DNA of 59,082 nt, filler included, from Platydemus manokwari (taxonomy: Eukaryota): the NCBI GenBank assembly GCA_037951405.1. It is 5 parts of 5 records of this genome, joined end to end, with 100 filler letters (N's around TTAATTAATTAA, not from the genome) between each part and the next. Parts side by side here need not be neighbours in the genome. Positions count along the whole stretch, not along the records: positions 12,081 to 24,293 come from JBBMOY010245561.1; 4 more parts are not named here. One strand, 5' to 3'. Both the position numbers and the translations under genes were made by a program. A model generated the notes under the pieces. That model had not been told where the DNA came from, made no database searches, and worked only from the letters and a program-made list of their open reading frames with translations. Shown here piece after piece: positions 15,301 through 21,300 of this stretch (position 1 is the first letter of the stretch; every line of letters begins with the position of its first letter).

Positions 15301-18300
15301 GGCTAGAACAAGTGATGATTTTCCAGATCCCGTCCGCCCAACTATTCCCACCTTTTCCCGAGGATTAATTGTAAAATTTAGGTTTTTCAATATCAAATCT
15401 TGTCCTTCACGATATTTTGTTGAATAATTGATAAATTTGATCATTCCATCAGGCCACGAATCATCAGGTTTTTTATCAGCAATTTCCCATGGAGCCTAAC
15501 AAAGTAAAACGTATTCGATTTAATATCATATAAATAAATCAAACTTCAGGAGTCATATGAGAATATTCTTCAATTCTTTCCACTGATACGATGTTTGCTT
15601 CGACTTCTGAGCTCATTCTTACTAACCAATTCAAAGTTTGAGTGATGCTCAAAGCGTAACTAACTGATAGACCGACCAAACCCGCATTCAAATCAAGACC
15701 TTTATGCAAACTTAACACAGCAAATATTGCAGCAATGAAAACAATAATATTTCCAATTGTTTCTAATATTATTGCTAACCATCTAAGACAAAAAGAAAAT
15801 ATTATAAAATACAATGTTGGTTTGTTATTTTACAAAGCAGTTCATTCATTTACATTGAAAGTATAAAACGTTCAAAATGAAAACTAATCATGAATACATG
15901 TAAGTCATCATTAATAAAATCATGATAATGAAATTCTTGAAATAAACATAATTTAAAAATATTTATTAGAGTTACTTGGTCAAATACTTAATTTTAATGG
16001 ACGCGTAAACGTAATGAGTCTTGGATATATACATTTATACACACACACACATATATAGGATTGGAACAAAAGTCTTGTCCGACAGAAAATAATATTTATT
16101 TAATCAATAAAGATACGTAAATTTGTAAATATAAACAAAACATAATTAGTCTGTAAATCTAAAAAATTTCAATATTTTATGAAGAAATGAGGCACCAGTT
16201 GTGTGGAAACAATTTTGAAAAATTCCATTTCCTTCACAATAACACTCAAAATAAGGTTGCCGAGATCGGTTTTACAGTAAAAATGACGTAAAATCTATAT
16301 CTGTGTGAGTAATGTTAAGCTATGCTTTTATATTCTATTTGTAACAATACTATGTTGCAATAAAATCTTTTTACAAATTTCCACATCTGCCCTGTATAAG
16401 TCGCTACTATTTTATAACACGCGCATTGAAATCTAATTGAAAAGTCACGACATCAAATTATCTATATTTAACAACAATAATTTTAACAAAATTTATGTAC
16501 TTCGATATGAATTTATAAAACTTTTTTGATTAAAATTTTTGAACTCTCACACTCTACTTGCTTTAAATAAATAAATTCACTTTGGGGCACATAACGCGTG
16601 GGATGGGATATTTACCAGAAAATACCATTATTTAATTATGAAAAGATTTGTAATTAGATTATCTATATTTAACGAATTCAATCTATTTTTTTAATCTTCA
16701 TTCTAATAAATATTAGTATATTCATCACTGTCACTAACCAGATTTCTTTAATCAAATTTTTCAACGGTTTTGTATTTAAAAAAACAATTGAATTGTTACA
16801 ATGATTAATATACAAGTAAAAATTCTACATCATTATTTTTACTCTTGCTCACCTATTAGAAGAGATATTAGCATAATATGCATATGAATTTTTGTCAACC
16901 TTGTCTTCAGACGATTTGATAAATTTCTCGCATAACGAATATGCTCGAATACTTGAAACACCTTGCAGCGTTTCACCAAAATGCGAATAGATTGGAGATT
17001 TGGAAACTGATTCTAATCTTTTCAGCTGTCTAGATGTGGCTACATAAAACCTCTGAATGAATCAACAATATTAAACAAATCCAATCGTCAATTTTAAAAC
17101 ATGCAAGTTGATATTTATATACATTTAATATAAGACATGCACAAACACCAAATTAAAAGGTTCAATCGATATAGTTAAGAATGGGAGATCAGGAATCAAT
17201 ACTATATGTTCCCAGAATTTCATTTACAATTTTGAATACAAAATAATTTATCATTAATTTTAACAAACAAATTGTTTGTTATATTATTAGTTGTATTATT
17301 TTATTGTTTATTCTTGATCTCCCAGTTGTTAATCACTACACCTATTTAATGGTAAGCCGTTAACCTGGGTCAAAACATAGATAACAATTGTGAAAATCAT
17401 GGGAAGAATAATCCAAGGATTTGGCAATGTGACCATTATAAAGACCACAATGGATGCCAAGACTGTTATGAGAAATCCATTGATAAAATGTGGCAGCATT
17501 GTGCCTACTGAATTGAGATCACTGGAGAATCGATTGATTATTCTTCCAATGGGAATTGTGTCAAATAAGGACATTGGCGAATGGAGAACACTATGCAATA
17601 AATGCTTATGAATGTCTCTCGCTGACTTGATGGTAGCATAAGCAAACATTATAGCAGATAAGAGTTGAAACAGGGCTACAAGAAGGATAACACGTTGATA
17701 TAAATAATAAATTCTGATGAAAACTATTTTAAAAAGTTTGATTTCAAAAATTTTAGTATAATAACGGTTTTTTCCAAATTTAAAAATGAGATTTAATACA
17801 GGCATTGAAGTATTTAGTGGAGATGAGATCAAAGCATTTTTACAGTTAAAACTTAGTTACTACCAGGTGGAACTTCATTCTCTCAGATGTCTCTCTTATC
17901 TAGCTTTATCATTGACAATAATTTGTAAAACCTATTATTTAGCAATCTTCTTAATTAATTCGCCTAACGAAAATAAAACTTTTAAAAACAGAAAATGAAG
18001 CTCAGAATATATTAATACAATTATAATGCAAAGTAATCGATAATAATTCCGTAATAATGGCATGTTGTATTCAAAATTGTAAATAAAAAAAGTTGTTTTT
18101 ATTCTTCATTTAAATATACTAAATTATAAAAGAATTTTAAAAATACGGAAAATAAATCACAAAAAATAAACTTAAATTATATATTTGGTGCTTAATCAAT
18201 ACAAAGGAATTTTATCCACTAAAATTGTTTATAAGGAATGAAGTAATTGAAGAAATGAGAAACAATAGAAGAGAAATTTATTACTGATATACCTTTGAAC

Positions 18301-21300
18301 AAAAACATCGTGATAAAAAAAGTAGAAACGTTTTAAGGCCATACAGGGATATTTGTACACATTTCCTAGTTTATAAACGAACTAAATTCGTTATACTTCT
18401 TTATCGATAATATTTATCGAGACTTACATTCAGTGTTCTTGTAAAATTTATGATAATAATGATTAGTATGGTTTAGATTTGTTGATTTGATAAATTATGC
18501 TTGTAAGAGATGACGACCAAGAAGTAAAGTAAGATAGATATGAAGATTTATATATTAAAAAACCTCATAGTTTAAGATAGTTATTAAATTTTATATAATG
18601 AGTTATTCTGTCAATATGTCAGCAGCGGCTCATTATCGTATCAGTAGTGATCTAAAATAAAAAATCAATACATTTATAATCCACCAAAAATAATTATATT
18701 CGATTAAATTCAACTGAAAACCAACGAAACATTGAACGCCGACTTTGTGAAATAGATACTTGCCTTGATTATAAAATATATACAAAAGAGAGGTATCAAC
18801 ACCACTAAAAATAGTGGGATAAACACAGTAATAGCCACACCAGCTTCTATCACTCTAAGCCAACTTTGTAGAAGTGATTCGATTGCATTGGGTAAGACAT
18901 GATCCATAACTCTCATGTCCCCAGCAAATCGATTCAGTATTCGACCAACGGGATTGACATCAAAGAAAATCGGAATGGACATTCGTAAAACATTGGCCAA
19001 TAGATTATGATGTAATCTGCTGCAAACCATCATAGTGCCATAACAATAAATAAGGAGAGCGAACAGGTTCATAAGTACTGAAAGTTAAATTAATATTTAT
19101 TATGTTAATATTGTACCTAGATTTCGTATCTTAGTGTTACTGAAACTTTTACTTCATCAATGAACGAATAAGAAATCAATGAGAACGAAAATTGGAACAA
19201 AAATGTGTTAAATATGGATTTACCAAGAAAAGATTCGAAAAACCTAAAGAGGAAAGTCAATAATAGTATAAATAAGACAAGATTTTTAAGCAAGCATCAC
19301 AAAAAACCTTTTATCTGCAATATCAATCAATATTTTTTAAAATAATCATTGTTTTTATTCATTTGTTATTATTAGATAATCGTTATGCAACAAATTTCAA
19401 GATTAATCCCAATAACGTTTAGCATCAAAACGACTAAGTTTATAAATTAATAAAATAACTGATTTTATTCGAGTTTAATGGTGTATATATACCGTGCGAC
19501 TCATAAGTCTTCGTCTCTACAACTAAAATGAAACAACAAAACACAATATAATTTATACACACTTATTTATACTCATTGATATTAATTATTATTCAGTGAT
19601 TTATGTACTTTATTTCTTATTAATCAATTGCGTTATTACAATATGGTGGAAACGGCTGGTGATGTTCAATTTTCGCTTGTGGATAGTGTTTATAGTTAGC
19701 CATACAATAGTGTACAAGACTAGTGCCGAAGCTTGCGAAGAAATTTAACAACATTTCAAATGTCCAGCACCAACTTGGACAACAGTGCAATACTGGAAAC
19801 AGAAGTTTGAAGAAACTGGAAACTTATCCACTAAGTTGGGACCACGAAGACCGTCTGAGGAAAGCATGAAGGAAAAGGTGGTAAATTTTGTAAAAGAGAA
19901 TGATGGCACAAACCAACGAGAAACTTCAGAAACGCTTGATCACAGATGTCTCACTATTTTCAATTTTAGTTTTAGAGACCGAGATTTATGAATCGCACGG
20001 TATATCAATCTTCATTCTAGCTCAACATAAAAAAAACATATACATCAAATTGTCTTTGATTTGATTGGCGTGATATGATTGGTGATTTGAAAATGTGTAG
20101 ATAAAGTAGAAATTACCAATAGAAAGATCTTAATTATGGTTGTGAGAACAAAAATAATGAACAAATTACCATATACACTGAATTCAATCAAATAAACCCG
20201 TGTAACACCTTAAACGGATAAAATTTGGAACATTTCGAAAATTCCACTCAAATATCACTGGTAAATCAATTAATCACAGTGGTATGAAATATGATCATGC
20301 ATGAAACAAACACCAAAGCAGGTATACAATGTAAAAATCATCGATAGGAACACCGGAAACCTGATCTCCCAACCAGGTTACATTTAAAAACATCTATTAT
20401 GTACCTGCATCGGAATGAATATTAAGCTGGTAACCATTAAGATGACAACAAAGATCAAAATCTGTTGCCAAGACGAAGCAGACCACAACAATACAAAAAT
20501 TATGCCAATTCCATCGAGGACACATCGTACTAATCCAGAAATAGTAAAATGGATCACTAAATCGAGTTGGGCAATATCATCGCTAAATCTGGTGAGAAGT
20601 GATCCACTACTTATTCTAATAAATGTCAACAGTGGCCAATGGAATAATGCCGTTACAAATTTAATGAAGAATTCATTGCTCACTCCTAACCCTATCAAAA
20701 CAGAACTGGCTCCACACAACATATTTAGCACTCCTAATAACGCAAAGAAATGGCGACTGGAATGATATAAATCATTTACAGTATTACTGACCTTGGATGA
20801 ATCCTAAAACTCCATAAATACCAAGATTCAAATCTCGTTGACGATTGAGAAAAGTTTTGATTTCTGATATTTCGGCCTGACTGGAATTCGGATATTTAAT
20901 CAAATCGGCTAATATTTTTGAATAGTTAGCCGAAATTCTTGATTGACCAGACCATCTGACGAGCCACAGGTTGGCAACCAGATTGAAAGCTTGTGTAACA
21001 ATAAATAGTGACAATGTTATACCAGCAAGACAAAATCCAATAGACCTCAAATAGGCTATATAAACTGACCATTTCACCTGTATAAATATTAGTTTATTCA
21101 ATTAACTATATCCCTATCCTACATTTCCCTCTTTGGATGTCTCTTCTTCAATAAGTTTATCTCTTTCTCTATCTTCTTTTATTCCCATCTTTTCAAGTTC
21201 AAGTTTACAGGTCTGCTCCTTTTCGTTATTTTTCTCATCGAAAACCTATAGAAGAATATTATCAACTTTTGTGTGATTAAAGTGTATTTCAAACTATATG

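Follow-up and report, generated by a model that had tools for sequence, protein, structure and literature searches.

Control of mutually exclusive splicing by RNA structure is known almost wholly from insects, together with a few mammalian genes. In the Drosophila genes 14-3-3zeta, Mhc, and MRP1, a docking site (dock) lies downstream of the cluster of variable exons and a selector follows each variant (PMC6071210), and flanking pairs of elements that exclude one another as pseudoknots have been described in srp, RIC-3, and MRP1 (PMC6071210, PMC4691838). According to a duplication model, several selectors come to share one dock when an exon is copied together with the near arm of a downstream hairpin (Ivanov and Pervouchine 2018, PMC6071210). 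Exon arrays in MRP genes are reported to have had several independent origins across phyla (Yue et al. 2017, as cited in PMC6071210 and PMC9741552), and C. elegans mrp-1 carries four such exons (PMC4165533). Here we describe a candidate switch of this type in an ABCC/MRP transporter gene from Platydemus manokwari (assembly GCA_037951405.1). The window, i.e. the whole stretch of DNA analysed, is 59,082 nucleotides (nt) long and joins parts of five records, of which positions 12081-24293 (JBBMOY010245561.1) hold the gene. An earlier note on this DNA had proposed one dock, placed downstream, with competing selectors; a downstream dock is in itself not new, being already published for the three Drosophila genes named first above. 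From the sequences and positions of the elements, their rarity, their single-copy state, and the states predicted for them, we infer that the helices form in the cell and affect splicing. That competing intronic helices help decide which of three variable exons (A, B, and C) joins the next constitutive exon is a reading to which we assign about even credence.

The gene runs on the minus strand and only part of it lies within the piece. Walker A, signature, and transmembrane motifs occur in minus-strand reading frames from ~23900 down to 12350, G+C content is ~28-30%, and membership in the ABCC/MRP family is indicated both by the named best protein matches (MRP1/ABCC1-3) and by the match of the variable exons to ABC_membrane. 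The best full-length protein relatives are from spiralians (annelid and molluscs), namely Owenia, Saccostrea, Mytilus, and Candidula. The low G+C content, one very short intron (58 nt, below), and mariner-like copies in the thousands would suit a flatworm, perhaps a planarian. The variable segment corresponds to one exon of the second transmembrane domain (TMD2), present in three tandem copies after the linker behind the first nucleotide-binding domain (NBD1). The exons concerned and the first intron are as follows (a slash marks the splice junction):

20792-21077, minus strand: upstream constitutive exon; 3' end at 20792, phase 1, donor GTCAGT; 5' boundary approximate
20734-20791, minus strand: intron from the upstream exon to exon A; 58 nt, acceptor TTATTAG/GA
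20405-20733, minus strand: variable exon A; 329 nt, donor GTACAT (GT at 20404-20403), ABC_membrane 26.7 bits
18764-19077, minus strand: variable exon B; 314 nt, GC donor AAG/GCAAGT, ABC_membrane 43.1 bits
17365-17675, minus strand: variable exon C; 311 nt, donor GTTAAC (GT at 17364-17363), ABC_membrane 63.5 bits
16853-17052, minus strand: downstream constitutive exon; acceptor TTCATTCAG/AGG, phase 0

Exons A, B, and C have the structure of a mutually exclusive cluster, being tandem homologues of similar length and phase, each with its own splice sites. All three match the same part of ABC_membrane (positions ~57-160), enter in phase 1, and exit in phase 0, and each has a length of 2 mod 3, so that joining any two shifts the frame. 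Identity from exon to exon is 39-48% at the DNA level and 16-30% at the protein level, and the copies are, to judge from their sequences, old. Exon C is the most canonical TMD2 variant and exon A the most divergent, its Pfam ABC_membrane match (positions 68-160, 26.7 bits) falling slightly below the curated cutoff of 28. With the last part (residues 417-524) of P0141, a 541-residue UniParc fragment (UPI000600ECB6) from a related species with 69% identity over the NBD1 frame, exon A shares 63% identity, versus 16-20% with exons B and C; because of this identity, we consider exon A a conserved coding exon and no decaying copy, and its unusual variant to be conserved as well. The upstream constitutive exon is 60% identical to residues 322-416 of the same fragment. 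In the gene model of that fragment, the upstream exon is followed by an A-type exon and by no other variant, which lends weak support to exclusive use.

Several further features of the cluster were recorded. Exon A is 5-6 residues longer than B and C and is without the canonical GRIxNRF-type motif of this ABCC segment, having SSGSLLTRF in its place. Its acceptor is the one met first, at intron-definition distance, only 58 nt from the upstream exon; TTATTAG/GA is the sole frame-keeping acceptor in that intron, and an acceptor-like CAG at ~20757 would create an in-frame stop. The donor of exon B (18758-18764) belongs to a GC-AG intron and is otherwise a perfect match to the consensus. A hidden fourth variable exon was ruled out by tblastn.

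The intronic elements of the putative switch are the following:

20360-20371, minus strand: selector A, helix 1; RNA UGGGAGAUCAGG, intron positions 34-45 after donor A
20345-20353, minus strand: selector A, helix 2; 9 base pairs (bp; 7 Watson-Crick, 2 G-U) with 17214-17206
18062-18088, minus strand: arm X; intron B-C, 387 nt before exon C, pairs with 17244-17218
17310-17325, minus strand: selector C; core UGGGAGAUCA at 17324-17315
17218-17244, minus strand: arm X'; intron C-D, between selector C and the dock, abutting the second selector-A site
17182-17214, minus strand: docking region; core CCUGAUCUCCCA at 17193-17182, second selector-A site at 17214-17206

At the centre of this arrangement is a 10-mer with exactly three occurrences, at 17182-17191 (minus), 17315-17324 (plus), and 20362-20371 (plus). 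In the RNA sense, UGGGAGAUCA lies at intron positions 34-43 after donor A and 41-50 after donor C, and the complementary copy is found at 17191-17182, ~130 nt ahead of the acceptor of the downstream constitutive exon, which begins at 17052. Helix 1 of selector A comprises 12 Watson-Crick bp (20371-20360 with 17193-17182), and both A helices together reach -36.7 kcal/mol. Selector C pairs with the dock over 10 bp, extended to 14/15 (-22.8 kcal/mol), and the two can be prolonged into 23-nt arms, 83% complementary and 97 nt apart. Since the same dock bases (17191-17182) are used by both, selectors A and C must compete. The earlier note had placed all three 10-mer sites correctly, and the pairings it described were reproduced, i.e. 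14/15 for selector C, and for selector A 12 Watson-Crick bp plus a second helix, which we find to have 9 bp including 2 G-U. Its competition between A and C likewise stands, given the identical dock bases; the wider idea of one dock addressed by competing selectors covers exons A and C, two of the three, exon B being without a selector for the dock.

An inverted repeat absent from the earlier note, X:X', would fill this gap in our model and may serve exon B. The repeat spans 27 nt, of which 25/27 (93%) are complementary, with 20 bp perfect (-26.9 kcal/mol, BLAST E=1.3e-6). It brackets exon C, is nested within the A:dock pairing, and crosses C:dock, so that X:X' excludes C:dock pairing. A direct 12-nt repeat, TTTGGTGTTTGT, was also observed on the minus strand at 20306-20317 (intron A-B, positions 88-99) and 17141-17152 (intron C-D, positions 213-224); with a BLAST E=0.25, it may reflect common origin or be a further element that the two introns share.

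The complementarity is statistically unusual and is placed where the docking model expects it. Using a Monte Carlo procedure based on dinucleotide-preserving shuffles of the 100 nt that follow each variable exon and of what remains of the last intron, a shared dock word (its complement occurring after at least 2/3 variable exons) of at least 10 nt arose in 0/3000 shuffles, and one of at least 9 nt in 5/3000. When up to one mismatch in the 10-mer was allowed, 0.55 matches were expected, and at least 3 matches were seen in 3/100 shuffles. Outside the motif, no alignment is possible among the introns that follow A, B, and C, yet the 10-mer is identical at similar donor offsets; it is therefore not leftover homology. 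Every 40-nt window of the 12.2-kb pre-mRNA piece was scanned against the dock, giving 228 independent sites, among which selector A ranked 1/228 (-36.7 kcal/mol; mean -10.3, sd 3.9) and selector C ranked 6/228, ranks 2-5 being in G/C-richer exons. Of the Watson-Crick helices of at least 11 nt in the piece (n=104), the longest is X:X', and only three contain at least 5 G/C, namely a transposon end, A:dock, and one 11-mer. The 58-nt first intron was considered as the site of an upstream dock and rejected, as it holds no meaningful partners or dock-like complementarity, and the elements gave no match to known RNA families.

A rival reading is that the complementarities are real in the DNA but have no role, the helices either not forming or not mattering in vivo, and that exon choice depends on the strength of the splice sites, the size of the introns, RNA-binding proteins, and the decay of products with a shifted frame. 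We consider this unlikely, though it deserves serious weight. Lengths of 2 mod 3 already render double inclusion unproductive, and the splice sites differ strongly, as seen in the GC donor of B and the 58-nt intron before A. Taken alone, the 12-mer is not impressive (P ~0.02 in the Monte Carlo; weak BLAST E=0.25), and loose windows let exonic sites come close in duplex energy: at 60 nt, one such site attains -35.7 versus -39.1 kcal/mol for selector A, although the energies given by RNAduplex are inflated when windows are as large as 100 x 212 nt or 60 nt, for which reason 40-nt windows and contiguous helices were preferred. What an absence of function does not account for is the joint event, found in 0/3000 shuffles, nor the fact that, once transposon sequence is set aside, both of the strongest complementarities in the 12.2 kb have one strand in the cluster's last intron and enclose variable exons. 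The ranking of partners also agrees with the docking model, and the helices are nested or crossing in the manner that a three-way choice requires.

Copy number was assessed by mapping, at 80% likeness, the contigs of one public run containing this locus. Contig depth over the selectors, the dock, and X/X' is 12-23, i.e. near single copy, by a test that very short or very old copies would escape, whereas depth over 19428-20011, a transposon serving as positive control, is 23,000-75,000 against ~12 in its flanks. The earlier note had named membership in a dispersed repeat as grounds for abandoning its proposal, and a depth of 12-23 speaks against such membership. The transposon itself is located in intron A-B:

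19487-20005, strand unassigned: mariner-like deleted element or miniature inverted-repeat transposable element (MITE); 43-nt terminal inverted repeats, 88% complementary

Its depth implies thousands of mariner-like copies, many of them internally deleted. A short frame within it (19785-19991) resembles the N-terminal helix-turn-helix of a transposase. The element is no part of the switch, yet it is located in the looped-out stretch.

The same data were used to weigh the idea that local inverted duplications or old, decayed small transposons left the arms behind as relics, any structure being incidental; 17182-17324 might be an element of 143 bp whose imperfect ends measure 23 nt, and X/X' an inverted segmental copy. 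The genome is rich in inverted-repeat transposons, one of which, with 43-nt ends, sits in intron A-B; selector C and the dock can be prolonged into the 23-nt arms described above (83% complementary, 97 nt apart); and depth is 23 in the bin 17238-17383 versus ~12 nearby. We nonetheless judge an origin of this kind, without function, improbable. All elements are near single-copy depth, unlike the true transposon, and no clear target-site duplication was seen beside 17182-17324. Selector A, 3.2 kb off, is complementary to this dock too and has a second helix for which selector C offers no equivalent, and X and X' are separated by an exon. Furthermore, a duplication origin is compatible with function and is a published route to competing structures (PMC6071210).

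Folding was carried out on the 3381-nt region that spans the end of exon A through the beginning of the downstream exon, both freely and under constraints. The unconstrained minimum-energy fold contains both A helices and X:X' together. Blocking selector A leaves X:X' as the one helix formed, with the dock free; with both selector A and X blocked, C:dock forms 10/10; and with X blocked, A:dock persists. These folds display three distinct states, and the pairings exclude one another, A and C by their shared dock bases and X:X' by crossing C:dock. When the last intron is folded alone, C:dock appears in both the minimum-energy and the centroid structures. Predicted pairing strength rises with distance, from C (-22.8 kcal/mol) through X (-26.9 kcal/mol) to A (-36.7 kcal/mol).

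A local structure was also predicted around the donor of exon C. In a hairpin at 17300-17390 (minus strand), selector C, as the 3' strand, pairs with the 14 nt that close exon C (17365-17378) and with the bases that open the intron, so burying the donor in a stem (-23.3 kcal/mol, z=-3.6, 0/200 shuffles). This hairpin and docking of selector C are alternative folds that compete. A similar fold over the donor of A is non-significant, and the region of the GC donor of B is predicted to be unstructured. The shared motif could act mainly locally, either as a protein-binding intronic element of A and C or as the 3' strand of hairpins that mask the donors of both, with long-range docking secondary or absent. 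The strength of the exon C hairpin and the similar, if non-significant, fold at A are in keeping with this, and in other animals runs of G shortly beyond the donor are known to act in splicing. A purely local role would leave unexplained the exact complement of the motif in the last intron, for which base composition gives an estimate of roughly 1e-4, as well as the second A helix and X:X', and we hold it to be quite improbable, slightly more so than a relic origin.

Returning to competition between long-range helices, the proposed switch would have three states. In the first, selector A would occupy the dock, with or without X:X', looping out B and C and bringing the donor of A to the downstream acceptor. 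In the second, X:X' would form alone, so that C would be looped out and B left. In the third, selector C would occupy the dock, freeing the donor of C, which would then lie within ~300 nt of the acceptor; an undocked selector C would instead fold onto the final 14 nt of that exon and bury its donor. The increase in pairing strength with distance would offset the kinetic advantage of the nearest partner, and double inclusions, being frame-shifted, would be lost.

Beyond the two points already granted above, i.e. the weak 12-mer statistics and the exonic competitor in 60-nt windows, several observations weigh against this proposal. Exon B has no selector for the shared dock (z=+0.4; best -16.8 kcal/mol), and arm X is ~680 nt beyond its donor. 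Selector A is partly held in a local hairpin, and minimum-energy folds of kilobase-long AT-rich RNA are unreliable. A downstream dock leaves the skipping of exons upstream of the chosen one unexplained, a gap that is shared by the published unidirectional model (PMC6071210). The sole public run with the locus consists of contigs that cover introns too, and is thus DNA-like; no RNA run with the locus was found. Orthologous DNA was likewise not found, as there is no contig on record for P0141 and a metagenome scan with an exon-A profile returned none.

A word-indexed protein search with the NBD1 frame yielded nothing above 66% identity, an exhaustive protein search yielded one close relative (P0141, 69% identity), and a search with P0141 added no further close relatives. 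In the literature searched, in which Yue et al. 2017 is represented through papers that cite it, no paper linked docking or selector sites to flatworms or other lophotrochozoans. Elsewhere in the gene, a fragment of a pogo/Tigger-type transposase (DDE_1, Pfam PF03184, E=5.5e-9) was noted:

14341-14535, plus strand: DDE_1 fragment, within an ABCC intron and on the strand opposite to the gene

At the least, the locus is a plausible further case of a known mechanism in a new phylum, and the switch is a well-supported prediction. More tentatively, and with somewhat less than even confidence, we propose that it is the first switch of the docking-site/selector type to govern mutually exclusive splicing in a spiralian (probably a flatworm), that it is independent of the insect MRP switch, and that it follows a three-state logic consisting of a shared dock for A and C, a nested loop-out helix for B, and a donor-masking selector, with strength rising with distance. 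If true, this would illustrate clearly how an RNA mechanism can evolve convergently, the insect dock having arisen on its own within the ABCC family too. It would also offer a compact case outside insects and mammals, with three exons and three helices in ~3.4 kb, a size suited to a minigene. Flatworm ABCC transporters matter for the export of drugs and xenobiotics, and isoform choice in a substrate-facing transmembrane segment could carry practical weight.

Comparison with described systems shows which components are shared and which are particular to this locus. Drosophila MRP (CG6214), as presented in PMC6071210 and PMC9741552, belongs to the same gene family, being likewise an ABCC/MRP gene with tandem-duplicated alternative transmembrane-domain exons, a dock in the intron downstream of the cluster, and selectors in the introns after the variable exons. 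It differs in having eight exons and in belonging to an insect, whereas the present gene is spiralian and has three, two of which address the shared dock. Because MRP exon arrays are reported, in the work cited through those papers, to have arisen several times, the exon duplication here is probably independent of that in Drosophila MRP. Exon 5 of Drosophila 14-3-3zeta (Yang et al. 2011, as cited in PMC6071210 and PMC11802352) has a similar layout, with three alternative exons, looped-out intermediates, and one dock before the next constitutive exon; there, a selector follows each variant and, by the account in these sources, the elements are conserved across insects and mutation-tested, whereas the present switch is a prediction from sequence and its exon B has no selector.

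X:X' has its counterparts in the bidirectional or multi-domain structures of the srp, RIC-3, MRP1, and Dscam exon 4/9 clusters (PMC4691838, PMC6071210), in which complementary elements flank a single alternative exon and pseudoknot-forming helices cannot coexist, as is the case for X:X' and C:dock. What differs is that a flanking pair and a shared dock are here combined within one three-exon cluster, and that selector C may mask its own donor. The local hairpin of selector C with the dock, like the recurrence of the same 10-mer after A, fits the duplication model; however, the exons are only 39-48% identical and the introns cannot be aligned, so that an identical 10-mer needs selection or convergence. 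Finally, exons 7a/7b of human ATE1 (PMC7797038) provide a parallel outside insects, in that two intronic elements compete for a third and the choice is mutually exclusive, although ATE1 is from vertebrates, the choice there is between two exons, the long-range elements are different ones, and the mechanism is experimentally supported.

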